From IMG/VR virus record IMGVR_UViG_3300036770_007495, positions 62,001 through 126,000 of that record: a stretch of DNA of 64,000 nucleotides. One strand, given 5' to 3'. Below, piece after piece: positions 1 through 62,216 of this stretch. The position numbers and the translations under genes were made by a program. Below the pieces are notes generated by a model. That model did not search any database and was not told the DNA's origin. It saw only the letters and a program-made list of their open reading frames with translations. Positions within the stretch are counted from its first letter, which is position 1. Each line of letters starts with the position of its first letter.

Positions 1-58
1 AGATTAGCGTCTGCCTGAAGAGCAGAAAAGACTGGAGCGTTACCAGTAGCAGCCACCA
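1..58 (+). tRNA. tRNA-Phe(GAA), 5' end outside window
   Basis: ctgc-ctGAAga-gcag; T-arm actgg-agcgtta-ccagt; ACCA. Confidence 0.8.
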
Positions 59-62
59 TTTC

Positions 63-151
63 GGGACCTGCCCCCATCAGCGGACTGTAAATCCGTTGCC
101 ATTAATAAGATGGGAAGTTGGCAAGTGGTGCGTTACCACCAGGGCCCACCA
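63..151 (+). tRNA. tRNA-Tyr(GTA), D-arm-rewired
   Basis: gggacct/agggccc+ACCA; gcgga-ctGTAaa-tccgt; no D hairpin; cccatc 73-78 pairs gatggg 109-114. Confidence 0.75.
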
Positions 152-306
152 TTTCAAGTTGGAGATGACGCGCTGTGTTGTCTTTAAAACGCTAACCAAC
201 AAGAACAAACTAGTAATGCCGCTAGTATATACAAAGGCAGTCCTCATCACCTTATGGTGCTGATATGGCTTCTTTTTCCGTGAGCCCGTTAATCACGGAA
301 TATTTT

Positions 307-397
307 GGAGAGAGCCCGGCTAGACGAGGAGCAATCTTGGAAAGATTGTAACACTTCGAAAGAGGTGTTAAGGGTGCGAGTCCCTTTCTCTCCTCCA
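307..397 (+). tRNA. tRNA-Ser(GGA)
   Basis: ggagaga/tctctcc; caatc-ttGGAaa-gattg; long V arm; CCA. Confidence 0.85.
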
Positions 398-403
398 TTT
401 TAT

Positions 404-493
404 GGGCAGTTAACTAGACAAGCGCGCTGGGACCGACTTGAAATCGGATCGAGGTCGAAAGGCCTTGGGGTGCAAGCCCTCAGCTGCCCGCCA
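404..493 (+). tRNA. tRNA-Ser(TGA)
   Basis: gggcagt/gctgccc+GCCA; ccga-ctTGAaa-tcgg; long V arm. Confidence 0.85.
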
Positions 494-499
494 TTTTAT

Positions 500-574
500 G
501 CGGATATAATTCAGTGGTAGAATATCTCGTTGCCAACGAGAGTGTCGTCGGTTCAAATCCGACTATCCGCTCCA
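500..574 (+). tRNA. tRNA-Gly(GCC)
   Basis: canonical cloverleaf, TCCA. Confidence 0.95.
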
Positions 575-579
575 ATTAA

Positions 580-643
580 CCGTAGTGGAGAATCTACGGC
601 ATAACAAAATCTCTTAGATTGCAGAAACCTAACAAAACGCTGC
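580..643 (+). ncRNA. two tandem small H-type pseudoknots
   Basis: ccgtag/ctacgg with loop gaga pairing tctc; ttag/ctaa with loop gcag pairing ctgc; A-rich linkers. Confidence 0.45.
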
Positions 644-655
644 GCCTATTTCAAA

Positions 656-732
656 CGGGATGTAGCTCAGCCTGGTAGAGCGCTTGCTTTGGGAGCAAGA
701 TGTCGTCGGTTCGAATCCGGCTATCCCGACCA
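656..732 (+). tRNA. tRNA-Pro(TGG)
   Basis: canonical cloverleaf, ACCA. Confidence 0.95.
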
Positions 733-734
733 AT

Positions 735-816
735 TTTGCGGAGCAGAAATGCTAGTGTGCGGCCGAAAGACTGATGATGCGGCGTTTCGGGTAAAACCTC
801 GCGATCATCTCGCAAA
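735..816 (+). ncRNA. structured RNA, unknown
   Basis: tttgcg/cgcaaa closing stem, gca-gaaa-tgc, gatgat/atcatc. Confidence 0.35.
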
Positions 817-822
817 TTTAGA

Positions 823-924
823 TGTGGGTGAAAGTCCCAGAAGCATCACAGATGCTTGTTCCACGACGGGCTCTAAAGACTTGAACTGACAAGTGCAAGG
901 GTGAGTGTAAAGGTACTCCCCACA
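823..924 (+). ncRNA. multi-hairpin structured RNA
   Basis: tgtggg/cccaca; aagcatc/gatgctt; acttg/caagt; gagtg/tactc. Confidence 0.45.
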
Positions 925-934
925 AATTTCAAAT

Positions 935-1009
935 GCGGTGTAGATGTTAATGGCTGCACACCTGACTTCCAATCAGAAGGAGGGGGTTCGATTCCCCCAC
1001 ACCGCACCA
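935..1009 (+). tRNA. tRNA-Gly(TCC)
   Basis: ctga-ctTCCaa-tcag; TTCGATT T-loop; ACCA. Confidence 0.9.
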
Positions 1010-1013
1010 ATTT

Positions 1014-1234
1014 TATCAGAAGGAAGTTGGCTTAGAAGCAGCCATCTATAATGAGTGAAGCGAAGTACGAGTCTCCAACATCAACGGCCTAGTAAGGTGA
1101 CTGTGATAATGCATGATGTATCAGAGTCAGATATTGGCTCATGCGTTGGATATCGTCTGACTGCGGATAGTAAAAGAGCACCCCGTAAATGGTAAGGCTT
1201 AATTCTTCTTAGGCGTAACAGCACACCTCTGATA
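1014..1234 (+). ncRNA. 23S rRNA H43/H44 (uL11-binding site) mimic with internal insertion
   Basis: GGAAGTTGGCTTAGAAGCAGCCATC 1022-1046 and GCGTAACAGC 1213-1222, closed by tatcaga/tctgata. Confidence 0.75.
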
Positions 1235-1242
1235 TATTTTAA

Positions 1243-1336
1243 GGATCCATGACAGAGCCTGGTATTGTACGTCCCTGCTAAGGACAGGTCAGCCCCTAAA
1301 AAGGCTGCGTAGGTTCAAATCCTACTGGATCCGCCA
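1243..1336 (+). tRNA. tRNA-Ser(GCT)
   Basis: ggatcca/tggatcc+GCCA; long V arm. Confidence 0.9.
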
Positions 1337-1374
1337 TTTTGTTGCTTTAAATCGTTCATGAGATAAATCACGTT

Positions 1375-1800
1375 ATGAATGAAATTGAACAACTTAAATC
1401 AGAGTTTGAAGAACTCAAAAATGCACAACAAGAAACAATCTTTGAAGACCACAACATTGTGGGTGATGCAGAATCATATGTTGGTTCATTGAACAGTGGT
1501 CTAAAAGAGCTAGTTAATCACTACGTGATGGATTATCTCATCATCATGAATGCGTTAAAGTTCATGACTGGCCCAGTTGCTTGCTATCAAGGCAAAGCAA
1601 TTGAGGCACAAACAATCAAGTTTGAAACAATGAAAGAGTTGAGAGACTTTCTCAAAGACAAACAATATTTGCTGTATGTAATTGTTGCACATGCAAGTGT
1701 TACATATGAAGAAGTGGAATGGACTAAAACAATGGCACCTAATGCTAAAACAATTGGTGCAAAAATTTCATACCTCTTTAGAGGTCATATTCTAGAGTAA
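1375..1800 (+). CDS. hypothetical protein
   Basis: 141-aa ORF filling the gap between tRNAs. Confidence 0.75.
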   Translation: MNEIEQLKSEFEELKNAQQETIFEDHNIVGDAESYVGSLNSGLKELVNHYVMDYLIIMNALKFMTGPVACYQGKAIEAQTIKFETMKELRDFLKDKQYLLYVIVAHASVTYEEVEWTKTMAPNAKTIGAKISYLFRGHILE

Positions 1801-1808
1801 TTTCAATT

Positions 1809-1885
1809 CGGGTGGTGTCTGGACAAGTAAACGAACTCGGTTTGGAGTCGAGTAAATGTGGGAGCGTTACCCACTCACCCGACCA
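1809..1885 (+). tRNA. tRNA-Pro(TGG), divergent second copy
   Basis: cgggtgg/tcacccg+ACCA; ctcgg-ttTGGag-tcgag. Confidence 0.75.
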
Positions 1886-1889
1886 ATTT

Positions 1890-2312
1890 ATGAGTACAAA
1901 GCATCAAGGGGATATCTCTGAAGCTTATGCAATAGCAAAATTCTTAGAGTTAGGATTTGTAGTAGCAAAGCCAGTAGGAGACAATCAGAGATATGATCTT
2001 ATCATTGATAGAGGCAATGGATTTGAACGAGTTCAAATAAAAACAGGTACACATTCTACTGGATGTGTAGTTGCATATACAAGATCTGTGTACAATAATA
2101 CAAAACAGTCAAAAGTTGTTGGATACAAAATATCGGAAATTGATCTAATTGCAGTAGTTGTTCACAATACTAAATGTGTTTATTTGTTGCAAAGCAAAGA
2201 ATTCACTGAGGATAATAGTGACAACGTAAAGAAAACCATCTACCTTAGAATTGATCCACCGAGAAACAATCAAATAAAAAAAGTTAAATGGGCAAAGGAA
2301 TACGTCATTTAA
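1890..2312 (+). CDS. free-standing PD-(D/E)XK endonuclease (group I intron-associated, I-Ssp6803I-like)
   Basis: GDISE...PVGDNQRYDLIID...RVQIKTG; start moved to ATG after tRNA-Pro. Confidence 0.8.
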   Translation: MSTKHQGDISEAYAIAKFLELGFVVAKPVGDNQRYDLIIDRGNGFERVQIKTGTHSTGCVVAYTRSVYNNTKQSKVVGYKISEIDLIAVVVHNTKCVYLLQSKEFTEDNSDNVKKTIYLRIDPPRNNQIKKVKWAKEYVI

Positions 2313-2313
2313 T

Positions 2314-2389
2314 ACACGAGAAGGCACCACGGTTGGGCCGGTAGGTTGTTACCCTATTGAACTTGGTTCGATCCCAAGCTCGTGTGCCA
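2314..2389 (+). tRNA. tRNA-Asn(GTT), atypical
   Basis: acacgag/ctcgtgt+GCCA; gtagg-ttGTTac-cctat. Confidence 0.7.
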
Positions 2390-2398
2390 ATTTCAAAT

Positions 2399-2474
2399 GC
2401 TCCAGTAGCTCAATTAGAAGAGCGGTCGCCCGATTAGCGATAGGTTGTAGGTGCAAGTCCTACCTGGAGTACCA
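2399..2474 (+). tRNA. tRNA-Ile(GAT) with C33
   Basis: tcgc-ccGATta-gcga; ACCA. Confidence 0.8.
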
Positions 2475-2487
2475 ATTTCAAGAATGT

Positions 2488-2528
2488 TAGTGGTTAGGAG
2501 GATAACCACTAGAGAAAACACCTCCCCA
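2488..2528 (+). ncRNA. H-type pseudoknot (GGAGG loop / CCTCC tail)
   Basis: 9-bp tagtggtta/taaccacta, loop ggagga, cctcc 9 nt downstream, then CCA. Confidence 0.55.
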
Positions 2529-2537
2529 ATTTCAAAT

Positions 2538-2612
2538 GGACTGCGAGCTTGTGTGGATAAGCAATCGGCTTTTAACCGATAGAACAGGGTTCGAATCCCT
2601 GGCGGTCTACCA
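2538..2612 (+). tRNA. tRNA-Lys(TTT)
   Basis: atcgg-ctTTTaa-ccgat; ACCA. Confidence 0.9.
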
Positions 2613-2620
2613 ATTTCAAT

Positions 2621-2697
2621 GCCCATGTAGCCCAATTGGTAGAGGCGTATGACTTAGGATCATAATGTTGGGGGTTCGAATCCCTCTATGGGTACCA
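2621..2697 (+). tRNA. tRNA-Leu(TAG), short variable loop
   Basis: tatga-ctTAGga-tcata; ACCA. Confidence 0.85.
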
Positions 2698-2705
2698 ATT
2701 TATAT

Positions 2706-2785
2706 GGGCATGTATACCCTCGCGCTACGGACGCGTTGAAAGGTTAATTAGAAACATGCGGGTGCAACTCCTGCCATGCCCACCA
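2706..2785 (+). tRNA. tRNA-Arg(ACG), D-arm-rewired
   Basis: gggcatg/catgccc+ACCA; cgcg-ctACGga-cgcg; ggtt-AATTAGA after the anticodon arm. Confidence 0.75.
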
Positions 2786-2793
2786 TTTCAAAT

Positions 2794-2877
2794 ACACTAG
2801 CAGCAAGTGGTGGTTGCGGGTTCTCTCCAAAAGAACTGTTTTTACTAAAGTGGGTTCGATTCCTACCTAGTGTGCCA
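2794..2877 (+). tRNA. tRNA-Trp(CCA), enlarged variable region
   Basis: acactag/ctagtgt+GCCA; gttct-ctCCAaa-agaac. Confidence 0.8.
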
Positions 2878-2888
2878 TAAATATATAC

Positions 2889-3773
2889 ATGAGTGTCATT
2901 TATAATGTTGACCAATACAATCAAAGTAAAAGCATAAGTGCTAAAATAGGTGTATTGTGTCCATGTTGTACCAATTGGTTTGAGACAACTAGACTGCTGT
3001 TACAGCGAGCGTTAAAGTCTAACAGACTAAAATTTTGCTCTATAAAGTGTGCAAATAAATTTCAATCAGAAAAGATACAGCTTGAATGTGTTTTCTGCAA
3101 ACAACAAATAGAGAGAGTTGCAAGTCAACTTAAAAATGTAAAACATGTATTTTGTAATCACTCTTGTGCAGCGCAATTTAACAACAGCTTAAGACCTAAA
3201 AAGTTAAAACAACCAAAGAAAGCTAAACCTGTAGCAAAAGTTGTTGAGCACATTTGTATTAATTGTGGAAAAATATCCATTGTTTCTGCTCGTGCTAGTC
3301 TCAAAAAGAAATTTTGTTCTGGCAGTTGCAGAAACGTAATCAATAATAAAACCATAAGAGGTACGCGATCGAAAGTAGAGAAAGAGTTTGAATTAGCAAT
3401 TAAAGCAAATTTTCCAGATTTGAAGTTTAATTGCAATGACAGACAAATTCTTGATGGGTTGGAGCTTGATTTTTACTTTCCTGAAATTAATCTAGCAATA
3501 GAATTTAACGGTATATGGCATTTAAAACCAATACGTGGAGAAGAACTTTTAGTAAAATACAAACAAAGAGACAAACACAAAAAACGCTTATGTGAAGAGA
3601 AAAATATTAAACTTTTAGTGCTTTGTGATGAAGCTAGTTCCAACAAATCAATTGATGAGCAAGTACATAAAGCAATTGCGTTTTTAAAACAATTTCAACA
3701 TGCTTCAGAAGCTACAGTAGACGGGCCGCTCCCTCTTAAGGAGAATATTTGTGTGGTTGCAACTACCACCTGA
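2889..3773 (+). CDS. free-standing Vsr/DUF559-like endonuclease with N-terminal Cys-rich zinc repeats
   Basis: repeated CxxC..FCSxxC; LELDFYFPEINLAIEFNGIWH. Confidence 0.8.
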   Translation: MSVIYNVDQYNQSKSISAKIGVLCPCCTNWFETTRLLLQRALKSNRLKFCSIKCANKFQSEKIQLECVFCKQQIERVASQLKNVKHVFCNHSCAAQFNNSLRPKKLKQPKKAKPVAKVVEHICINCGKISIVSARASLKKKFCSGSCRNVINNKTIRGTRSKVEKEFELAIKANFPDLKFNCNDRQILDGLELDFYFPEINLAIEFNGIWHLKPIRGEELLVKYKQRDKHKKRLCEEKNIKLLVLCDEASSNKSIDEQVHKAIAFLKQFQHASEATVDGPLPLKENICVVATTT

Positions 3774-3780
3774 AGCACCA
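3702..3780 (+). tRNA. tRNA-Lys(CTT)
   Basis: gcttcag/ctgaagc+ACCA; ctcc-ctCTTaa-ggag. Confidence 0.75.
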
Positions 3781-3787
3781 ATTTAAT

Positions 3788-3863
3788 GCTCCGTAAGCAG
3801 ATATAGTGATGCGGCTCTCTTGTAAAGAGCAGACAGGGGGTGCAAGTCCCTCACGGAGCTCCA
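3788..3863 (+). tRNA. tRNA-Thr(TGT)
   Basis: gctct-ctTGTaa-agagc; TCCA. Confidence 0.85.
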
Positions 3864-3963
3864 TTTAAGGAAGTATCAGCTGAGGTGGACGCTCTGCGGA
3901 GAAGTGTTACTTGTGCAAGAAAGCTAAACGAACGCTTTCCAGCTAGCTTCCAACAATTTCAAT

Positions 3964-4037
3964 AGCTCCTTAGCATAAAAGTAATGCATCTGGCTTTGAC
4001 CCAGATGAAGTTGGCGCAATACCAGCAGGAGCTGCCA
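3964..4037 (+). tRNA. tRNA-Gln(TTG)
   Basis: tctgg-ctTTGac-ccaga; GCCA. Confidence 0.85.
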
Positions 4038-4042
4038 TTTTT

Positions 4043-4225
4043 ATGAAAACAGCAATTGATTTAAAAGAATATTTGAGTCAAAACTCTTTAACAGATGTAT
4101 TTGAAGAACCTGTCAAAGTTTTAATTCAAATGGAAGACGATACTTATAAACATTGTACAATATGCACAATGGCATATGTTTGGTCTGGTGAAAGTGAAGC
4201 ACAAAAATGCCTTATAATAGGTTGA
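4043..4225 (+). CDS. small hypothetical protein
   Basis: 60-aa ORF between tRNAs. Confidence 0.6.
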   Translation: MKTAIDLKEYLSQNSLTDVFEEPVKVLIQMEDDTYKHCTICTMAYVWSGESEAQKCLIIG

Positions 4226-4237
4226 ATATTTTCAAAA

Positions 4238-4312
4238 TGCTCTCGGAAGGTAAGATCTTGAACTGTCTCATAAGCAGTTATAAAGTGGGTGCAATCCCCA
4301 CGGGAGCGACCA
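4238..4312 (+). tRNA. tRNA with CAT anticodon (elongator Met or Ile2)
   Basis: actgt-ctCATaa-gcagt; reduced D arm; ACCA. Confidence 0.7.
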
Positions 4313-4352
4313 ATTTAAGGAAATTCAATATAATAAGAGAGTAAATTTAAAA

Positions 4353-4430
4353 GTCCCTGTAGTTAACGGAAGGCTATAACATCGCCCTTTCACGGCGAAA
4401 TACCCGGTTCGACCCCGGGTGGGGATGCCA
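4353..4430 (+). tRNA. tRNA-Glu(TTC)
   Basis: tcgcc-ctTTCac-ggcga; GCCA. Confidence 0.9.
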
Positions 4431-4444
4431 AAACAATTTCAAAT

Positions 4445-4518
4445 GACCCTGTAGATTAATAGTAAATCGCCACGCTTTCAACGTGAAGACGACGGAGCAT
4501 AACCGTCCTGGGTTGCCA
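4445..4518 (+). tRNA. tRNA-Glu(TTC), second copy
   Basis: cacg-ctTTCaa-cgtg; GCCA. Confidence 0.8.
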
Positions 4519-4527
4519 ATTTCAAAT

Positions 4528-4605
4528 AGAGCCGAAGTCAAACAGCATTGACGCTCGCCTGTCGAGCGAGATATAAAGTGGGGGCAGCACCCACCGGCTC
4601 TGCCA
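4528..4605 (+). tRNA. tRNA-Asp(GTC)
   Basis: ctcgc-ctGTCga-gcgag; GCCA. Confidence 0.85.
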
Positions 4606-4614
4606 ATTTCAAAT

Positions 4615-4693
4615 TCACGGGTAGTTTATTTTTGGGTAAAACAACCTTGGCATGCAAGGGAGAAGGGTGTTCAAATCACTCGCCTGTGAGCCA
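4615..4693 (+). tRNA. tRNA-like gene with non-canonical anticodon loop (ggCATgc)
   Basis: acceptor, D and T arms and CCA present; no U33. Confidence 0.55.
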
Positions 4694-4701
4694 ATTTCAA
4701 A

Positions 4702-4775
4702 CCTCCTGTAGCTCAAAGGTAGAGCTCTCGGTTGATAACCGAAGGACGTAGGATCGTTACCTGCCAGGAGGACCA
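4702..4775 (+). tRNA. tRNA-Ile(GAT)
   Basis: tcgg-ttGATaa-ccga; ACCA. Confidence 0.85.
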
Positions 4776-4784
4776 ATTTCAAAA

Positions 4785-4860
4785 GCCCCTATAGCCCAAC
4801 AGCAGAGGCAATACGTTAAGGGCGTATTCAGTGCAGGTGCAAATCCTGCTAGGGGCACCA
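4785..4860 (+). tRNA. tRNA-Leu(AAG), short variable loop
   Basis: atacg-ttAAGgg-cgtat; ACCA. Confidence 0.8.
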
Positions 4861-4865
4861 ATTTT

Positions 4866-5048
4866 ATGAAAATAATTGTCAGCACAGAACAAGAAAAGAT
4901 TGCTTTATTAAAAGCTTCAAAATACATTCATGATCTAAAATGTTTAGATACAAGCGATGATGCTGTTAATACAATAGCTCATTTGTATTGTGCACCATTT
5001 TTAATTGAAGTTGATCCTAATTTAAAAATTTCAGTTGAACAACAATAG
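4866..5048 (+). CDS. small hypothetical protein
   Basis: 60-aa ORF between tRNAs. Confidence 0.6.
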   Translation: MKIIVSTEQEKIALLKASKYIHDLKCLDTSDDAVNTIAHLYCAPFLIEVDPNLKISVEQQ

Positions 5049-5077
5049 GAAAGAGTATATAATGTTGTAGATAAAAA

Positions 5078-5153
5078 TCCCAAGTAGCTCAGCGGTAGTA
5101 GCGAGTGGCTGTTAACCACTAGGTCGCTGGTTCGATCCCAGCCTTGGGAGCCA
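5078..5153 (+). tRNA. tRNA-Asn(GTT)
   Basis: canonical cloverleaf, GCCA. Confidence 0.95.
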
Positions 5154-5163
5154 TTTTCAAAAT

Positions 5164-5237
5164 TGCAGGTAGGTGGTCTAGTGACCATTCTGGGCTCATA
5201 ACCCGGAGAGCGTGGTGCGATTCCCGGCCTGCTACCA
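5164..5237 (+). tRNA. initiator tRNA-fMet(CAT)
   Basis: GGG/CCC at the base of the anticodon loop, 1-72 mismatch, ACCA. Confidence 0.8.
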
Positions 5238-5246
5238 TTTTTTAAG

Positions 5247-5274
5247 TTGATAAAGACAAACAATACGCTATAAT
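5247..5274 (+). promoter_or_regulatory. sigma70-type promoter
   Basis: TTGATA-16 bp-TATAAT, 6 nt before ATG 5281. Confidence 0.6.
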
Positions 5275-5280
5275 AATAAC

Positions 5281-5469
5281 ATGAATACATACGAACAATT
5301 GAAGGAGCTTGTAGAAGCATTTGCCATTGAAGACGAAAAGTTCAATAATGGCAAGTCGTCTGCAAGTACAAATGCACGTAAGCGTTTACAAGATATTATT
5401 GTGCTTGCAAAGACTCGTCGCAACGAAATTACGGCTGAGAAGAATGCACGCAAGCAAGCAAAAGCTTAA
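5281..5469 (+). CDS. histone H1-like (Hc1-family) small basic protein
   Basis: EKFNNGKSSASTNARKRLQDI..LAK..R.EI pattern. Confidence 0.7.
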   Translation: MNTYEQLKELVEAFAIEDEKFNNGKSSASTNARKRLQDIIVLAKTRRNEITAEKNARKQAKA

Positions 5470-5481
5470 GCGTAGTAATTA

Positions 5482-5557
5482 GCCCGGTTAGCTCAGCGGT
5501 AGTAGCGCCTCCTTTACACGGAGATTGTCGGCGGTTCGATCCCGTCACCGGGTACCA
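5482..5557 (+). tRNA. tRNA-Val(TAC)
   Basis: canonical cloverleaf, ACCA. Confidence 0.95.
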
Positions 5558-5563
5558 GTTTAT

Positions 5564-5638
5564 GGGGCTCTAGTGCTAGCGGTAACACGTCGCCTTTGCA
5601 CGGCGAAGTTTGGGGTTCGACTCCCCAGAGCTCCACCA
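5564..5638 (+). tRNA. tRNA-Ala(TGC)
   Basis: G3:U70 pair; ACCA. Confidence 0.95.
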
Positions 5639-5647
5639 ATTTCTAAA

Positions 5648-5734
5648 TGATCGGCGTCTGAAATGTATAAAGCCGGATAACCCGCGGAGATTGGGTCGGA
5701 TGAGATTAATAATGACGAGTATACCCGGTCACCA
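5648..5734 (+). ncRNA. CCA-ending RNA with an acceptor-like stem but no cloverleaf
   Basis: tgatcgg/ccggtca+CCA; gtata/tatac. Confidence 0.45.
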
Positions 5735-5736
5735 AT

Positions 5737-5878
5737 TCCTCGGTAGTGTAATGGTGCAACGGTCAGCAGCGAAAGATCGGGTCTTCCTTAAGGGTCTGCA
5801 GCAAACAGACCAAACAGGCGAATCTTAGCGAATGTCTGCGGACAACAGGTGTTGGTTCGAATCCAACCTGAGGACACA
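5737..5878 (+). ncRNA. tRNA-shaped RNA with the anticodon arm replaced by a large domain
   Basis: tcctcgg/ctgagga; D-like tagtgtaatggtgcaac; perfect T arm gttgg-ttcgaat-ccaac. Confidence 0.6.
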
Positions 5879-5880
5879 TT

Positions 5881-6082
5881 TTGATAGCAAGGAAAGACGC
5901 AGTTCGCGGGTAATGAGAAAGCAATGAGTGGGGCCGGGTTGGTCAATGGGCTGCAAATGATTGCAACGTCTGCAGCGAGCACCAACTGGACGGAAGCATT
6001 GCAAAGTGTAGATTACAAATGGAGAATGGGCAAGGAGGCTGGGTCTACCAGCATTAACTCCCCGATACCTCACCAGCTATCA
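5881..6082 (+). ncRNA. ~200-nt structured RNA
   Basis: ttgatagc/gctatcaa closing; gcaatg/cattgc; gttggt/accaac; gctgca/tgcagc; gctgg/ccagc. Confidence 0.55.
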
Positions 6083-6086
6083 ATTT

Positions 6087-6225
6087 CAGAACATTCAATC
6101 AACCGCAACACAGAGGTCGATCTTGCAAGCCGAGTACCTCTGACGGCTCTGATAACAGGTGCGCTTGCACAAGCCTTGCGAATGGTTCTGCATGCACCAG
6201 CTGAATTAGCTACTCAGTGTGGTGC
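6087..6225 (+). ncRNA. structured RNA
   Basis: cagaac/gttctg; cagaggt/acctctg; gcacca/tggtgc. Confidence 0.45.
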
Positions 6226-6237
6226 TAAATTTTCTAT

Positions 6238-6312
6238 GGACGTTGAGCCAGCTGGCGTGGGCGGAAGTCTGCAAAACTTCTTAGGTGGGTTCGATTCTCA
6301 CAACGTCCTCCA
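6238..6312 (+). tRNA. tRNA-Cys(GCA)
   Basis: gaagt-ctGCAaa-acttc; U73; CCA. Confidence 0.9.
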
Positions 6313-6337
6313 ATTCTAGTACGCGTATCCGGCGCGA

Positions 6338-6404
6338 GGCTCGTCGCTGGTTAATTCTAGACACCTGGTCTTCCAACGTCGCAGGTGAAGTTAACGAGCC
6401 GCCA
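6338..6404 (+). ncRNA. T-armless tRNA-like RNA
   Basis: ggctcgt/acgagcc+GCCA; ctgg/ctag; cacctg/caggtg. Confidence 0.5.
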
Positions 6405-6408
6405 ATTT

Positions 6409-6837
6409 ATGAAAACAAAAATGCTGATATTTGGTTTGCCGGGATCCGGCAAAACCACTCTTGCAAAAAAGTTAGTTGGTGCAGTTGCTGACTCTATGCA
6501 CATCAATGCTGATGCAGTTAGAAGTGCAGTTGATGATTGGGATTTTTCGCAACAAGGCCGCATTCAACAAGCACATAGAATGCATCAATTGAGTGAAGCA
6601 AGCAATGCTGCTCTTGTAGTTTGTGACTTTGTCTGTCCTTACCAAAGCACAAGAGATGCATTGTTCAATGATTACTTTCAAGTGTTCATGGATACCATCA
6701 AGAGCAGCAGATTTGCTGATACAGATGCAATTTTTGAACATGTCAATTATTGTGATTTTCGAATTACAAATTTTGACCAAACAGAAATTTTTATCAAATT
6801 CATTGTTGATTTAGTTGTAAAACCATCCATTGTATAA
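6409..6837 (+). CDS. adenylylsulfate kinase-like P-loop kinase
   Basis: GLPGSGKTT, NADAVR, WDFS..GR, DFVCP. Confidence 0.75.
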   Translation: MKTKMLIFGLPGSGKTTLAKKLVGAVADSMHINADAVRSAVDDWDFSQQGRIQQAHRMHQLSEASNAALVVCDFVCPYQSTRDALFNDYFQVFMDTIKSSRFADTDAIFEHVNYCDFRITNFDQTEIFIKFIVDLVVKPSIV

Positions 6838-6856
6838 GAGTAAATAAACAACAAAA

Positions 6857-6939
6857 GCCCCGGTAGCGGATCCGCCTTCTAAGCGGAGCATTGTACCGTA
6901 ATTGGACGCATACAGGTTCGAGTCCTGTTCGGGGTACCA
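6857..6939 (+). tRNA. tRNA-Arg(TCT), D-arm-rewired
   Basis: gccccgg/tcggggt+ACCA; tccgc-ctTCTaa-gcgga; gcgg 6866-69 pairs ccgt 6896-99 followed by AATTGGA. Confidence 0.8.
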
Positions 6940-6950
6940 CTTTTCAAAAA

Positions 6951-7027
6951 TCCCTGCGTATCATAATTAGCTAATGTCCTCGCCTGTGAAGCGAGCTAAG
7001 ACGGGGCAGAACCGTCCCAGGGAACCA
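6951..7027 (+). tRNA. tRNA-His(GTG) lacking G-1:C73
   Basis: ctcgc-ctGTGaa-gcgag; ACCA. Confidence 0.75.
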
Positions 7028-7463: not shown

Positions 7464-7742
7464 ATGAACAATCGTAGATCATTCTTCAAAAGCCTCATTG
7501 GCTTGATCGTTGCACCAAAGGTTGCTGAAGCTCTACCAACAGAAGCTCCAATACCATCAATTCCTGTATATGCTCCAATGAGGAGATTAAGGGCTAATTG
7601 GTCAATTGAAGTGGAGCAAGATCTTATGCGTATGCATGGCATAGACCTTGATGCAATGCTATTAACAAATATGTCAAAAGCAATTCAGGAAGAAATTGAT
7701 AATGACATGGTAAAAAAATTAACAAAGAAAATGGGGAGTTAG
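7464..7742 (+). CDS. Tat-like signal fused to a major-capsid-protein fragment
   Basis: NRRSFFK; C-terminal half aligns to gp23 of this window. Confidence 0.75.
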   Translation: MNNRRSFFKSLIGLIVAPKVAEALPTEAPIPSIPVYAPMRRLRANWSIEVEQDLMRMHGIDLDAMLLTNMSKAIQEEIDNDMVKKLTKKMGS

Positions 7743-7806
7743 TATAGAAGCAGTACATTGGCTCGACACGCCAAAGAAGAAGGAGCGTTACCTTCACTCC
7801 CTACCA
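7733..7806 (+). tRNA. tRNA-Val(GAC)
   Basis: ttggc-tcGACac-gccaa; ACCA. Confidence 0.8.
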
Positions 7807-7807
7807 T

Positions 7808-7882
7808 GGTTCCTAAGCATAGATAGCGATGCACACGATTGGTATTTGTGATAGAGGAGTGCAAATCTCCTAGGAACCTCCA
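7808..7882 (+). tRNA. tRNA-Thr(GGT)
   Basis: cacga-ttGGTat-ttgtg; TCCA. Confidence 0.8.
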
Positions 7883-8705: not shown

Positions 8706-8801
8706 GCTCCAGTAGCTCAATTGGTAGAGCGGAAGGCTTATACCCTTCGTATGCACCAGATTAGTGCGCGGTTGTCGGTTCGAGCCCGGCCTGGAGTACC
8801 A
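8706..8801 (+). tRNA. tRNA-Ile(TAT) with long variable arm
   Basis: gaagg-ctTATac-ccttc; canonical D and T arms; ACCA. Confidence 0.85.
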
Positions 8802-57793: not shown

Positions 57794-58662
57794 ACAGAAC
57801 AGGTTTTATCCCATGCACTCACATGCAGGCGTGACAGACCAGTGAAACCATACTTTTTGGCCATTTCAAGCACAAATGCAGTGCGTTCATGGAAGTTTTC
57901 TCGACTATCCATGCCAGGCATGCACACCACCTGAGTCATGTCAATGCCAAATGGCTCCAGATAATCTGCAATGAATTCCTTGATGTCTTCTTCAGTTGAA
58001 ATCACAAACTTAAACCATGAATTCCAGTGGTCTCTGATGCGACAAATTGCATCTGGCACAATGCGTTCTTCCTTGCTCAAACCGGTGTTACTGAGCTTTG
58101 CACTGCAGTTGATCTGATGCAGACGGCTATACAATTCATCTTGAATAAACTGCGTTCCATTGGTCTCGATCTCATTGTATACACCAAAATCAACTTTAGG
58201 ATCTTCATTGATGTATTTGTCAGTGAGATAGTCAATGAAGTTTGTAATGCATTTCTGATGACGCGGCAGAGTTGGCTCACCACCAGTCCAAATGAGATGA
58301 GTCTGCCCTTTGAACACCCAATCTAGCATGGTAGAACCATCATAATTCTTATACTCTTTCCAACGATTGATGAGATATTCAAATGGTTTCTTCTCACCAA
58401 AAAGCCAAACTGGAAGAGAGTCGCAAGTCCAAGTTGCTTGACCTGCAGCATGCAAATCACCCTTGAAAGACCCCGGATCTGTGTTGCCTTGACCAGCATC
58501 TTTCACCTGTTTAGCAAGTGCTCTAGTAGCACCGCAAGTGAGATTGCAGTCTTTGAGACGGATAAAATAAGAAGGATGACCAGTAGTAATGCCTTCACCC
58601 TGCACTGAGAAAAAGTCCTCAGAAATTACAAGATAATCATGGTTATTGATAGTTTCACTCAT
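57790..58662 (-). CDS. queE: 7-carboxy-7-deazaguanine synthase (radical SAM)
   Basis: F.SVQGEG...G.P..FIRL..CNL.C; TGGEP; ETNG; RLH. Confidence 0.88.
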   Translation of the reverse strand: MSETINNHDYLVISEDFFSVQGEGITTGHPSYFIRLKDCNLTCGATRALAKQVKDAGQGNTDPGSFKGDLHAAGQATWTCDSLPVWLFGEKKPFEYLINRWKEYKNYDGSTMLDWVFKGQTHLIWTGGEPTLPRHQKCITNFIDYLTDKYINEDPKVDFGVYNEIETNGTQFIQDELYSRLHQINCSAKLSNTGLSKEERIVPDAICRIRDHWNSWFKFVISTEEDIKEFIADYLEPFGIDMTQVVCMPGMDSRENFHERTAFVLEMAKKYGFTGLSRLHVSAWDKTCSV

Positions 58663-58709
58663 AAGTAAAGGTAACTGATAGAAACAAGAATTCAACATAA
58701 ATAATACAT

Positions 58710-59465
58710 ATGAGCAAAAAAACTCGCTTGCGCAAAGCGCTGGCAGACCTCGAATTCGGTGATGGTGACATTGAAGTTCATACCACAAGATCATCTTCAA
58801 ATCTCGGAATCAGAAACAAGTATCAGCTCAATGATGTACATAAATCCTTCTTGGATACTTGTTTATATGAAAAAACCAAAATGGTGCTTGTTGATGGACC
58901 AGCTGGTACGGCAAAAACCTTTTTAGCAGTGTATGCTGGCTTGTTGCTGCTGCAAGAGAAAAAAATTAAAAATATCATTTACATTCGCAGCATTGTAGAA
59001 TCAGCAACCAAAAGCATTGGTGCATTGCCAGGTGAATTGGATGAAAAATTCAAGCCTTGGAGCTTGCCTTTGCTGGATAAACTCAATGAATTGCTGCCGC
59101 CAACTTCCATTGATGATCTCATGGAAAGTGGCACCATCAAGTGCATTCCTGTGAACTTTGTTCGTGGTCTCACCTTTCATGATTCCATGGTTATCATTGA
59201 CGAATTCCAGAATCTTACACATGAAGAAGGTGTTACAATCCTGACTCGCTTTGGTCACAACAGCAAGTACATTGCCATTGGCGATGCTCGTCAGGCAGAC
59301 ATTGGCTCAAAGTCCGGGTTCAAGGATTTGTTCAACGCTTTTGATGATGAAGAAAGCGCAGAACATGGCATTCATACTTTTAGGTTCGGCGAGAACGAAA
59401 TTGTACGAAGCAAAATTCTGCGCTTTATCGTGAGCAAAATTGCTAAGGTAAAGAAGTCGGGTTAA
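58710..59465 (+). CDS. phoH: PhoH-like ATPase
   Basis: GPAGTAKT; G.LPG..EK; RG.TF; IIDEFQN; GD..Q.D; IVRS. Confidence 0.92.
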   Translation: MSKKTRLRKALADLEFGDGDIEVHTTRSSSNLGIRNKYQLNDVHKSFLDTCLYEKTKMVLVDGPAGTAKTFLAVYAGLLLLQEKKIKNIIYIRSIVESATKSIGALPGELDEKFKPWSLPLLDKLNELLPPTSIDDLMESGTIKCIPVNFVRGLTFHDSMVIIDEFQNLTHEEGVTILTRFGHNSKYIAIGDARQADIGSKSGFKDLFNAFDDEESAEHGIHTFRFGENEIVRSKILRFIVSKIAKVKKSG

Positions 59466-61822: not shown

Positions 61823-62216
61823 GTGAGGGATCGACTACGCTGTTCATTTGAGCAATGAAGTCTTTGCTCAACAGCACTGGTTCGCTCATACCAGAGCGAT
61901 CAGAAATAGTAAAAGGCTGACCTTTGTAAGTCTTACCGTTAACCGTCACGTCGAGTCGAATCACGTGACGGTTTTCTTGTAATTGAGGTCCTTTGTTGAT
62001 CATCATTGTGCCTTGAGAATGAGCACGATGTTGTTTGCCATTGCATACAAATGTTACAATGGCACCATCATCTTTGATGTCTGTTGCATGCAACACATTG
62101 TGTCCATCATTGCCTGTATCAGCTTTGGCATCAAAAGCGCCAATGTTGTGAACTTCAATGCGCACTGTTGGTGGTATTGCGTGTTTTTCAAAAAAGAACT
62201 GCTTGAATGTTTGCAC
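61815..62216 (-). CDS. retropepsin-like (RimK-associated) aspartic protease
   Basis: AKADTG; E.R.VI; DRS.M..PVL. Confidence 0.75.

Follow-up and report, generated by a model that had tools for sequence, protein, structure and literature searches.

Phage tRNA genes with a rewired D-arm: a large and mostly unannotated class of arginine, isoleucine and tyrosine tRNAs

Three tRNA genes without a D hairpin

We analysed a window of 64,000 nucleotides (positions 62,001 to 126,000 of the IMG/VR record IMGVR_UViG_3300036770_007495), which is part of the 224.7-kb genome of a T4-like uncultured phage. Three genes of its tRNA array, all of them on the plus strand, have acceptor, anticodon and T arms but no D hairpin: Tyr(GTA) at 63-151 (89 nt), Arg(ACG) at 2706-2785 (80 nt) and Arg(TCT) at 6857-6939 (83 nt). 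Each of them has a 7-bp acceptor stem, a 5-bp anticodon stem with a 7-nt loop (U33, purine 37), a T arm, a discriminator and an encoded CCA. However, the distance from the acceptor to the anticodon stem is only 7 nt in both Arg genes and 10 nt in Tyr, against about 19 nt in a cloverleaf. As an earlier note on this sequence had proposed, these few nucleotides can pair with a segment downstream of the anticodon arm, which is directly followed by a D-loop-like sequence.

In Arg(TCT) the 5' strand of the displaced D-stem is GCGG (6866-6869, positions 22-25), followed by the anticodon arm at 6871-6887 with the anticodon TCT at 6878-6880. A connector, GCATTGTA (6888-6895), leads to the 3' strand CCGT (6896-6899, positions 10-13), and a similar connector was found in one relative. 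Next comes the displaced D loop AATTGGA (6900-6906; A14, A15, G18-G19, A20), followed by CGCAT and the T arm with a TTCGAGT loop. Identical copies of this gene are in L001, L029 and L118 (labels of this kind are our own).

In Arg(ACG) the 5' strand is TACC (2715-2718; U22, A23, C24, C25) and the anticodon arm lies at 2720-2736, with the anticodon ACG at 2727-2729. The connector TGAAA (2737-2741) belongs to an NGAAA type that is conserved in the short subfamily. The 3' strand GGTT (2742-2745, positions 10-13) pairs with TACC as one U.U plus three Watson-Crick pairs, which is the family pattern, and the A23-U12 variant of the usual C23-G12 is a compensatory change. The displaced D loop is AATTAGA (2746-2752; A14, A15, A18-G19, A20), and it goes with the T loop TGCAACT at 2763-2769. 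A 95%-identical homologue is in L004/L120/L325, and nine further rewired Arg(ACG) genes were found.

Regarding Tyr(GTA), the 5' strand CCCATC (73-78) plays the role of 22-25 and runs straight into the anticodon stem, whereas the 3' strand GATGGG (109-114) plays the role of 10-13. The anticodon arm lies at 80-96, with the anticodon GTA at 87-89, and one relative has a C-G to T-A compensatory change in this stem. The D-loop-like segment is AAGTTGG (115-121). The Tyr gene is less regular than the other two: its acceptor has an A4.G mismatch and can also be read as 8 bp plus a 4-bp T stem, there is no U8, the T loop (TGCGTTA) is non-standard and the D loop would be very short, therefore its core must differ from the standard one.

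ARAGORN calls none of the three genes. The Rfam tRNA model aligns Arg(TCT) only by deleting the D arm and inserting 21 nt in the variable region, at 33.2 bits; it gives Arg(ACG) 23.5 bits with the D arm deleted, below the threshold of 29, and Tyr no hit at all. The three genes are the only Arg and Tyr tRNAs of the array and of the whole 224.7-kb genome. The array does cover 20 amino acids, although Phe starts 16 nt upstream of the window.

Covariation of the displaced stem

Within one sequence, 3-6 bp could be due to chance, and the MFE z-scores are unremarkable; single-sequence folding energies are not better than those of shuffles. The pairing is instead established by covariation in homologues. 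In an alignment of 46 unique Arg(TCT) relatives, the pair between columns 13 and 51 is CG in 46 of 46; the pair 14-50 is UA in 23, CG in 11, GC in 8 and AU in 4; and the pair 15-49 is CG in 33, GC in 8, AU in 3 and UA in 2. All of them are 100% paired, and sliding the partner by one column drops pairing to about 49%. The other three helices also covary fully, the acceptor stem being 98.8% paired and the T stem 97.8%. Furthermore, pattern scans of viral contigs recovered 141 unique Arg/Ile relatives, and all three Watson-Crick pairs of the displaced stem form in 138 of them, using 19 different stems, whereas shuffling gives a mean of 34 and a maximum of 49.

The Tyr gene has 8 unique homologues, with five different 6-bp stems, all fully paired: CCCATC/GATGGG, CCTATC/GATAGG, CCCGTC/GATGGG, CCAACT/AGTTGG and ACATCA/TGATGT. 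In addition, TGCC at 97-100 pairs with GGCA at 120-123 as a short variable-arm stem, and the relatives have four different stems at this place (TGCC/GGCA, ACC/GGT, CCT/AGG and CTCC/GGAG), although this rests on inspection of only 8 sequences. The GG of AAGTTGG, which the earlier note had assigned to the D loop, more likely belongs to this variable-arm stem, and the preceding AAG may supply A18-G19, as the TGC T loop would require. Actually, AAGT is conserved in the relatives that have NGC T loops, whereas the relative with a TTC T loop has AATGGA instead.

The earlier note had also described the D stem of all three genes as pseudoknotted. This has to be corrected, because in the two Arg genes the displaced stem simply encloses the anticodon arm and is nested. 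Only Tyr and the long-variant relatives are pseudoknots.

These data also bear on the possibility that the genes encode D-armless tRNAs with a long, self-contained variable arm, where the short 5' segment is only a linker, as in mitochondrial tRNA-Ser(AGY), and the D-loop-like motif sits in a hairpin that does not dock on the T loop. In favour of this, the MFE fold of the window's Arg(TCT) draws a hairpin CCG/UGG plus UGU/ACG in the variable region, a local 3-bp hairpin can be drawn in the two Arg genes (CGT-AATTGG-ACG and GTT-AATTAG-AAC), and the Tyr class does have a covarying variable-arm stem. However, the local hairpin can form in only 17 of 141 members, and the MFE-type hairpin needs a YYR 3' strand, which about 44 of 141 members have, against the 138 of 141 that form the displaced stem. 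We consider this explanation unlikely. A second possibility, that these are decaying pseudogenes or assembly artefacts of one metagenomic genome, could be suspected because the array holds many odd tRNAs that scanners miss and because of the Tyr acceptor mismatch. It is effectively refuted by the compensatory substitutions in every helix and by the occurrence of the same architecture in hundreds of independent assemblies and about 260 isolate genomes, and the lack of other Arg or Tyr tRNAs in the genome also speaks against it.

Identity nucleotides, elbow and inferred fold

In a scan with no anticodon in the pattern, members with the D loop AATTGGA had the anticodons TCT (74), ACG (9), CCT (7) and TCG (2), which means that all 92 well-parsed A20 members have Arg anticodons; A20 is retained in every Arg member. 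In contrast, members with AATTGGT had TAT (30), GAT (9), CAT (4) and TAC (1), thus Ile-type anticodons; all had discriminator A, and 7 of 9 Ile(GAU) members had A23-U12. These are the published bacterial determinants for Arg (A20, C35, U/G36) and Ile (A73, U20, U12-A23, A35, U36) (PMC9976931). It should be noted that our scans fixed the D-loop and T-loop motifs, so their conservation is partly imposed, and only the stems, anticodons, discriminators and connectors were free.

Regarding the elbow, the displaced loop obeys the G18:U55 / A18:G55 rule. In canonical phage tRNAs, NGC T loops go with A18-G19 in 39 of 40 cases (against 5 of 1538) and TTC goes with GG in 1523 of 1538. In the rewired class, AATTAGA goes with a TGC T loop in all 3 real hits of a scan that allowed either letter, plus the window. 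Both this covariation and the A20/U20 split are hard to explain if the loop is not at the elbow and variable pocket, as the D-armless explanation would require.

The strand order proposed in the earlier note (8-9, 22-25, 26, anticodon arm, connector, 10-13, D loop, T arm) is the only one consistent with the covarying helix and with the D-loop motif directly following its 3' strand. After U8-A9 the chain goes straight into the strand that normally is 22-25, then 26 and the anticodon arm; a 5-12-nt connector returns and supplies the strand that normally is 10-13, followed by the D loop (A14, A15, G/A18, G19, N20) and by about 4-5 nt ending in U48 and the T arm. We infer that the same core can form as in a cloverleaf tRNA, with the D stem stacked on the anticodon stem and the D loop docked on the T loop, so the molecule would still be L-shaped but with a different backbone path. 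In the Arg and Ile members the rewired stem is one U.U plus three Watson-Crick pairs, nested around the anticodon arm, whereas in the Tyr members and in long-variant Arg/Ile members a short variable-arm stem also encloses the 3' strand and the D loop, which gives an H-type pseudoknot.

Thus, although there is no direct evidence of a mature RNA, of aminoacylation or of the fold, these are most likely working elongator tRNAs with a topologically rewired D arm. We infer that the host ArgRS, IleRS or TyrRS charges them through the usual identity nucleotides, sitting at their usual three-dimensional places, and that they read the phage's preferred codons. No advantage of the rewiring has been shown, and the resistance to host tRNA nucleases that the earlier note considered possible remains an inference.

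Alternatively, they could be tRNA-like RNAs not used for decoding, such as decoys or sponges for host tRNA-directed nucleases, regulators, or primers that merely keep a tRNA-like outline. The phage-only architecture and the lack of proof of charging would fit this view, as would the use of tRNAs by phages against anticodon nucleases, which seems to be an established strategy. Nevertheless, this is unlikely, because the anticodon is strictly tied to the identity nucleotides of the matching synthetase, the anticodons match the codon use of the phage, U33, purine 37, a 7-bp acceptor stem and a 5-bp T stem are kept with covariation, and these genes replace canonical ones in the same array slots. 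Actually, close relatives carry canonical Arg(TCT), Arg(ACG) or Tyr in the same arrays, and a contig from an RNA library continues from the same acceptor strand into a canonical D arm. The metatranscriptome contigs that cover the array reflect related phages, however, and could be DNA carry-over.

Comparison with known tRNAs and distribution in phages

Literature searches found no earlier description of this architecture, and these are the first widespread non-cloverleaf tRNAs that we could find outside organelles. Compared with canonical bacterial and phage class I tRNA-Arg and tRNA-Ile (Rfam RF00005), they share the 7-bp acceptor stem, the 5-bp T stem with a T loop, the 5-bp anticodon stem with a 7-nt loop, U8-A9, A14, A15/U48, G18-G19, the identity nucleotides A20 (Arg) or U20+A73 (Ile) and the array slots. 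They differ in that no D hairpin lies between position 9 and the anticodon arm, the two D-stem strands lie on either side of that arm, the D loop precedes the T arm and the variable loop as such is gone.

Metazoan mitochondrial D-armless tRNA-Ser(AGY/UCU) (PMC7609411, PMC4013460, PMC9427863) also has only a short connector between the acceptor and anticodon stems, and its secondary structure is not a cloverleaf. However, the mitochondrial molecules have lost the D loop and the D/T elbow contact and need adapted synthetases and factors, whereas the phage class, which is not organellar, keeps a D stem and a D-loop motif that covaries with the T loop and apparently uses ordinary bacterial synthetases. 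Class II tRNAs (Leu, Ser, bacterial Tyr) and other long-variable-arm or 8/4 and 9/3 allo-tRNAs (PMC5389517) have an enlarged region between the anticodon and T arms too; the Tyr members keep a short variable-arm stem, and the window's Tyr can be drawn as 8/4. Nevertheless, those tRNAs keep a normal D arm, and here the enlarged region carries one D-stem strand and the D loop itself.

Viral tRNA-like structures, for example the tymovirus TLS, and the tRNA-like domain of tmRNA seem to reach an L shape through a non-standard backbone path as well, including pseudoknots, but they would be parts of larger RNAs that do not decode codons, and in the tymovirus TLS the pseudoknot appears to build the acceptor stem and not the D stem; the Rfam Tymo_tRNA-like model gave only weak sub-threshold matches. 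The circularly permuted tRNA genes of Cyanidioschyzon merolae and the split tRNA genes of archaea appear likewise to depart from the cloverleaf order of segments, but they are probably processed into ordinary cloverleaf tRNAs, whereas here the 5' and 3' acceptor strands are in normal order and the mature RNA itself would be rewired.

This is not a peculiarity of one phage but a large family. Of the 59 matches in viral contigs, 58 are real tRNA genes, against 7 real matches in 596 Gb of prokaryote genomes, all of them on MAG contigs, and none of 5,426 complete E. coli genomes carries it. We found it in 259-271 GenBank phage records (phi92, Felix-O1-like, 121Q, Kuravirus and others), nearly always unannotated, and ARAGORN finds 0 of 145. 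A canonical tRNA with the same anticodon lies in the same locus in only 11 of 140 cases. Kuravirus-like phages have been reported to carry a single tRNA, that of YF01 being Arg(TCT) (PMC9965538), and in the Kuravirus record that we read (HC-25922) the gene is the rewired Arg(TCT). Regarding the codon use of the phage studied here, AGA is 35% of Arg codons and CGC+CGT+CGA are 56%, and these are the codons read by UCU and ACG(I).

The tRNA array and the three genes without a D hairpin

The window is bases 62001-126000 of a single 224,703-bp contig with 41% G+C. It encodes a portal protein, a T4-type major head protein, ribonucleotide reductase and a helicase. The major head protein is only about 34% identical to those of cyanomyophages, and a megablast search of the array against GenBank phages found only ordinary tRNA-Pro and tRNA-Val similarities. 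This is an uncultured, distant T4-like phage without a close cultured relative. Window positions -16 to about 9700 hold an array of about 38 tRNA-like genes, each ending in CCA followed by an ATTTCAAA-like spacer, and ARAGORN recognises 23 of them. Just upstream of the array, at genome positions 58613-59056 (3 kb upstream of the window), ARAGORN calls a tmRNA gene with the tag peptide GAEQCMLLNQTLG.

Small ORFs and homing-endonuclease genes lie between the tRNA genes, among them an HNH/homing-endonuclease gene and small ORFs at 2889-3773, 1890-2312, 6408-6837 and elsewhere, one of which is a P-loop kinase-like ORF just upstream of Arg(TCT). When contigs from metatranscriptomes were compared with window positions 940-6939, the tRNA segments were covered and the inserted ORFs were skipped, which reflects related phages without those ORFs and not expression. 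Ten further tRNA genes were missed by ARAGORN, at -16..58, 404-493, 1809-1885, 3702-3780, 4238-4312, 4445-4518, 4528-4605, 6951-7027, 7733-7806 and 7808-7882. These are Phe GAA, Ser TGA, Pro TGG, Lys CTT, CAT, Glu TTC, Asp GTC, His GTG, one with the loop TCGACAC, and Thr GGT, and many have non-standard T loops (AGCGTTA, GGCAGCA, AGCATAA, GGCAGAA) in which A58 is replaced. Another tRNA-like gene, at 4614-4693, has a normal acceptor stem, D arm and T arm, but its anticodon loop reads GGCATGC (no U33) around CAT. Furthermore, a tRNA-like element at 5737-5882 has acceptor and T arms about 146 nt apart, so that it carries an insertion of about 70 nt, and it ends in ACA instead of CCA. Related RNA-library contigs skip parts of it.

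Tyr(GTA) at 63-151, Arg(ACG) at 2706-2785 and Arg(TCT) at 6857-6939 are located where the earlier note had placed them. Each has a 7-bp acceptor stem, an anticodon arm with a 5-bp stem and a 7-nt loop (U33, purine 37), a T arm, a discriminator and CCA. Tyr departs from this pattern in one A.G mismatch in the acceptor stem and in a T arm with a stem of 4-5 bp and the non-standard loop TGCGTTA. Only 7 nt (both Arg genes) or 10 nt (Tyr) separate the acceptor stem from the anticodon stem, so the D hairpin that a cloverleaf has between positions 9 and 26 is absent, whereas 21-29 nt separate the anticodon stem from the T stem. The short 5' strand can pair with a segment of this long region, as GCGG/CCGT in Arg(TCT), (T)ACC/GGT(T) in Arg(ACG) and CCCATC/GATGGG in Tyr, and that segment is followed at once by AATTGGA, AATTAGA or AAGTTGG. 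The 5' and 3' acceptor strands are in normal order and flank the whole element, which is not the arrangement of permuted or split tRNA genes.

ARAGORN misses all three genes. The Rfam tRNA model (RF00005, gathering threshold 29 bits) fits Arg(TCT) at 33.2 bits by deleting the D arm and inserting 21 nt, gives Arg(ACG) 23.5 bits, below the threshold, also with the D arm deleted, and gives no match to Tyr at E<=10. Single-sequence folding (z-scores of -0.6 to -1.2) was not informative and does not decide between the pairing proposed in the earlier note and a local hairpin, and the MFE of Arg(TCT) prefers a hairpin that is not conserved. Homologues were needed.

Relatives in viral contigs and covariation of the displaced stem

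A protein encoded just downstream of the array recovered 23 related viral contigs. The closest of them carry identical or near-identical copies of the three genes, and BLAST of the three genes against these 23 loci gave only near-identical copies, too close for covariation. The copy of Tyr in the relative G001 differs by a C-G to T-A compensatory change in the anticodon stem. More distant relatives carry ordinary cloverleaf Arg(TCT), Arg(ACG) and Tyr genes in the same arrays, for example in the Cys-Arg-His order, and a contig from an RNA library shares the first ten bases of the window's Arg(TCT) and then continues into a canonical D arm. The rewired and canonical forms therefore occupy equivalent slots.

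In order to find more distant homologues, we searched viral contigs for an Arg(UCU) anticodon loop followed 14-24 nt later by AATTGGA and then a T loop. This gave 59 matches, of which 58 are complete tRNA genes, 56 with all 7 acceptor pairs (G-U allowed) and 2 with 6, and 46 of them are unique. The same pattern in 596 Gb of prokaryote genomes gave 22 matches. Fifteen of these are plainly chance, which calibrates the background at about 0.025 per Gb, and seven are real, all on MAG contigs. In the MAFFT alignment of the 46 unique relatives (A1) the acceptor stem is 98.8% paired with covariation at all 7 pairs and the T stem is 97.8% paired. This alignment misplaces the 3' strand of the anticodon stem, so only its three inner pairs were counted. 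The displaced stem is one invariant C-G plus two pairs that are 100% paired while using all four Watson-Crick types, preceded by a mostly U.U opposition, and sliding the partner by one column destroys the signal.

Wider scans found two groups. With A after GG in the D loop there were 101 unique sequences, and the anticodons of the well-parsed ones are TCT 74, ACG 9, CCT 7 and TCG 2, so every one is arginine. With a non-A after GG there were 45 rewired genes, all with T at that position, whose anticodons are TAT 30, GAT 9, CAT 4 and TAC 1 and whose discriminator is A in every case. Pooling 141 unique members, the three Watson-Crick pairs form together in 138, whereas shuffles give a mean of 34 and a maximum of 49, and nineteen different stems occur. 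A local mini D-hairpin (CGT-AATTGG-ACG) looked attractive for the two Arg genes of the window. However, it forms in only 17 of the 141 relatives and was rejected. The absence of a normal D arm also separates these genes from class II tRNAs, in which a self-contained variable-arm hairpin accompanies a normal D arm. Tyr and the long variants do have a variable-arm stem, but its loop carries the D strand. ARAGORN detects none of 145 unique members.

The phage tRNA-Ile(TAT) genes at 8706-8801 of the window, at the viral loci L201, L210 and L214 and at more than 50 other viral loci have a normal D arm plus a 22-25-nt variable region, which is unusual for Ile. Many carry ..AACAGATAATTGGTTCAT.., which resembles the displaced D loop of the rewired class. 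They could be an evolutionary intermediate or a coincidence of our search pattern.

Identity nucleotides, elbow covariation and the pseudoknot of tRNA-Tyr

We numbered the two strands of the displaced stem 22-25 and 10-13 because the 5' strand runs 5' to 3' into the anticodon stem with one spacer nucleotide, as 22-25-26-27 does in a cloverleaf, and the 3' strand runs directly into A14 of the D-loop motif, as 10-13-14 does. With this numbering the conserved pair is G12-C23, and in 7 of 9 Ile(GAU) members, and in the window's Arg(ACG), it is U12-A23. U12-A23, U20 and A73 are listed identity determinants of bacterial tRNA-Ile, and A20, C35 and U/G36 are those of tRNA-Arg (PMC9976931). The elements listed for recognition by bacterial ArgRS (A20 in the D loop, C35, U/G36 and A/G(U)73) are present in both Arg genes of the window and in all 92 well-parsed A20 members. 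So the identity nucleotides are kept at their structural places although their order along the chain has changed, and this is the strongest indirect argument that host synthetases charge these molecules.

The earlier note had proposed an elbow rule in which GG goes with a TTC T loop and AG with a TGC T loop, and this rule is real. Among canonical tRNAs in the fetched phage loci (2,276 ARAGORN calls, of which the unique sequences that could be parsed were tallied), T loops with G55 (TGC 23, AGC 12, CGC 3, GGC 1) go with A18-G19 in 39 of 40, and TTC goes with G18-G19 in 1523 of 1538, against 5 with AG. In a scan for rewired genes with AATTAGA that allowed either T or G at position 55, the three real hits, an Arg(ACG), an Arg(TCT) and an Arg(CCT) from different contigs, all have TGC, as the window's Arg(ACG) also has. 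This is covariation between the displaced loop and the T loop, and it supports docking of the two as in a normal L shape. Mitochondrial-type D-armless tRNAs, in which a connector replaces the D arm and the elbow nucleotides are lost, share with these genes a connector-length 5' segment. However, here a D-loop motif with G18-G19 (or A18-G19) is retained and covaries with the T loop.

The earlier note had described the D stem as pseudoknotted in the three genes. Actually, in the Arg and Ile members the rewired stem merely encloses the anticodon arm, so there is no pseudoknot. The exceptions are some long-connector Arg and Ile members, which have an extra 3-6-bp stem between the start of the connector and the segment after the D loop (GGA/TCC, CCA/TGG, CTC/GAG, GCCA/TGGC, GGTCG/TGACC and others), and there the D stem is an H-type pseudoknot.

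The description is right for Tyr. A loose structural descriptor scan gave mostly false positives in coding DNA, but a stricter one was usable, and the Tyr class comprises the window and seven further unique sequences. One of these comes from L220, an unrelated 100-kb viral contig which carries, within positions 2500-3200, a rewired Ile(GAT) and, about 500 nt away, a rewired pseudoknotted Tyr(GTA) with U8-A9 and a TTC T loop. The Tyr class has five different 6-bp displaced stems, all fully paired, as well as four different variable-arm stems (TGCC/GGCA, ACC/GGT, CCT/AGG, CTCC/GGAG). The stems were read by hand, because a second MAFFT alignment (A2) shifts the sequence L316 by one column. It also follows that the GG of the window's AAGTTGG probably belongs to the variable-arm stem. 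The conserved AAG before it would give A18-G19, which is what the TGC/AGC T loops of these genes require, and L220, with its TTC T loop, has AATGGA, although this last step is inferred from few sequences.

Distribution, annotation and putative function

The phi92-type gene matches 259-271 GenBank phage records, including Justusliebigvirus (phi92), Felixounavirus, Asteriusvirus (121Q, PBECO4), Kuravirus, Klebsiella phages (Sugarland, KB57-like) and Streptomyces phages. In the roughly 100 rows inspected it is almost always unannotated, and sometimes it is called tRNA-OTHER or is covered by a hypothetical or HNH CDS. In phi92 it lies unannotated between tRNA-Leu and tRNA-Ser behind a TTGACA...TATAGT promoter-like site. 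Gene 124 of Escherichia phage 121Q (positions 395-476 of locus L331), annotated as tRNA-Leu(taa), is in fact this rewired Arg(TCT). The scanner took part of the connector for the anticodon loop. The copy of Kuravirus HC-25922 (positions 151-229 of locus L330) is also rewired and unannotated and has the D loop AACTGGA, so our motif-based counts are underestimates. Kuravirus-like phages have been reported to carry a single tRNA, which in YF01 is Arg(TCT) and was linked to high AGA use (PMC9965538). No complete E. coli genome among those searched holds the gene. Hundreds of deposited phage genomes, including therapy candidates, lack this gene in their annotation, and others have spurious CDSs over it. 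tRNA finders need a new model.

Full-text searches of about 8.4 million papers and preprints, which did not extend to subscription-only papers, found no description of this architecture, and Rfam has no separate family. A 2020 review of non-canonical tRNAs never uses the word 'phage' (PMC7609411) and a 2024 paper states that all known bacterial tRNAs are cloverleaves. The class is still one of tRNAs, but it would be an exception in the bacterial translation system, and it exists in easily handled coliphages such as phi92, Felix-O1-like phages, Kuravirus and 121Q. The identity nucleotides and the tertiary-core nucleotides are kept while their order along the chain is not, and the class is a natural experiment on how much backbone connectivity matters to synthetases, EF-Tu, RNase P and the ribosome. 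It also offers a possible scaffold for orthogonal tRNAs.

This phage uses AGA for 35% and CGC+CGT+CGA for 56% of its Arg codons, which is what UCU and ACG (read as ICG) decode, and it has no other Arg or Tyr tRNA. Furthermore, a canonical gene with the same anticodon sits in the same locus in only 11 of 140 cases. We therefore take these to be working tRNAs, although their fold and charging are inferred and the expression data are only suggestive, since the sequence occurs in contigs of many RNA libraries but DNA carry-over cannot be excluded.

Escape from tRNA-directed nucleases is a reasonable but untested idea of why the rewiring is kept. In a further, rather doubtful reading, the rewired core would be an adaptation and not a neutral curiosity, that is, a phage-specific tRNA chassis that spread horizontally and radiated by anticodon shifts (Arg UCU to CCU, ACG and UCG, then Ile UAU, GAU and CAU, then Val), and that may have arisen a second time in tRNA-Tyr. 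It would persist because the altered D-arm and variable-pocket connectivity lets the tRNA escape host tRNA-directed defence nucleases, toxins or quality control, or the phage's own host-tRNA-degrading activity, while it stays a substrate for host synthetases, EF-Tu and the ribosome. It would then be both a new class of counter-defence and a natural semi-orthogonal tRNA scaffold. Regarding the origin, a single origin with anticodon shifts would explain the shared connector and loop motifs of the Arg and Ile classes, since UCU to UAU is one substitution, whereas the Tyr class looks like a separate origin.
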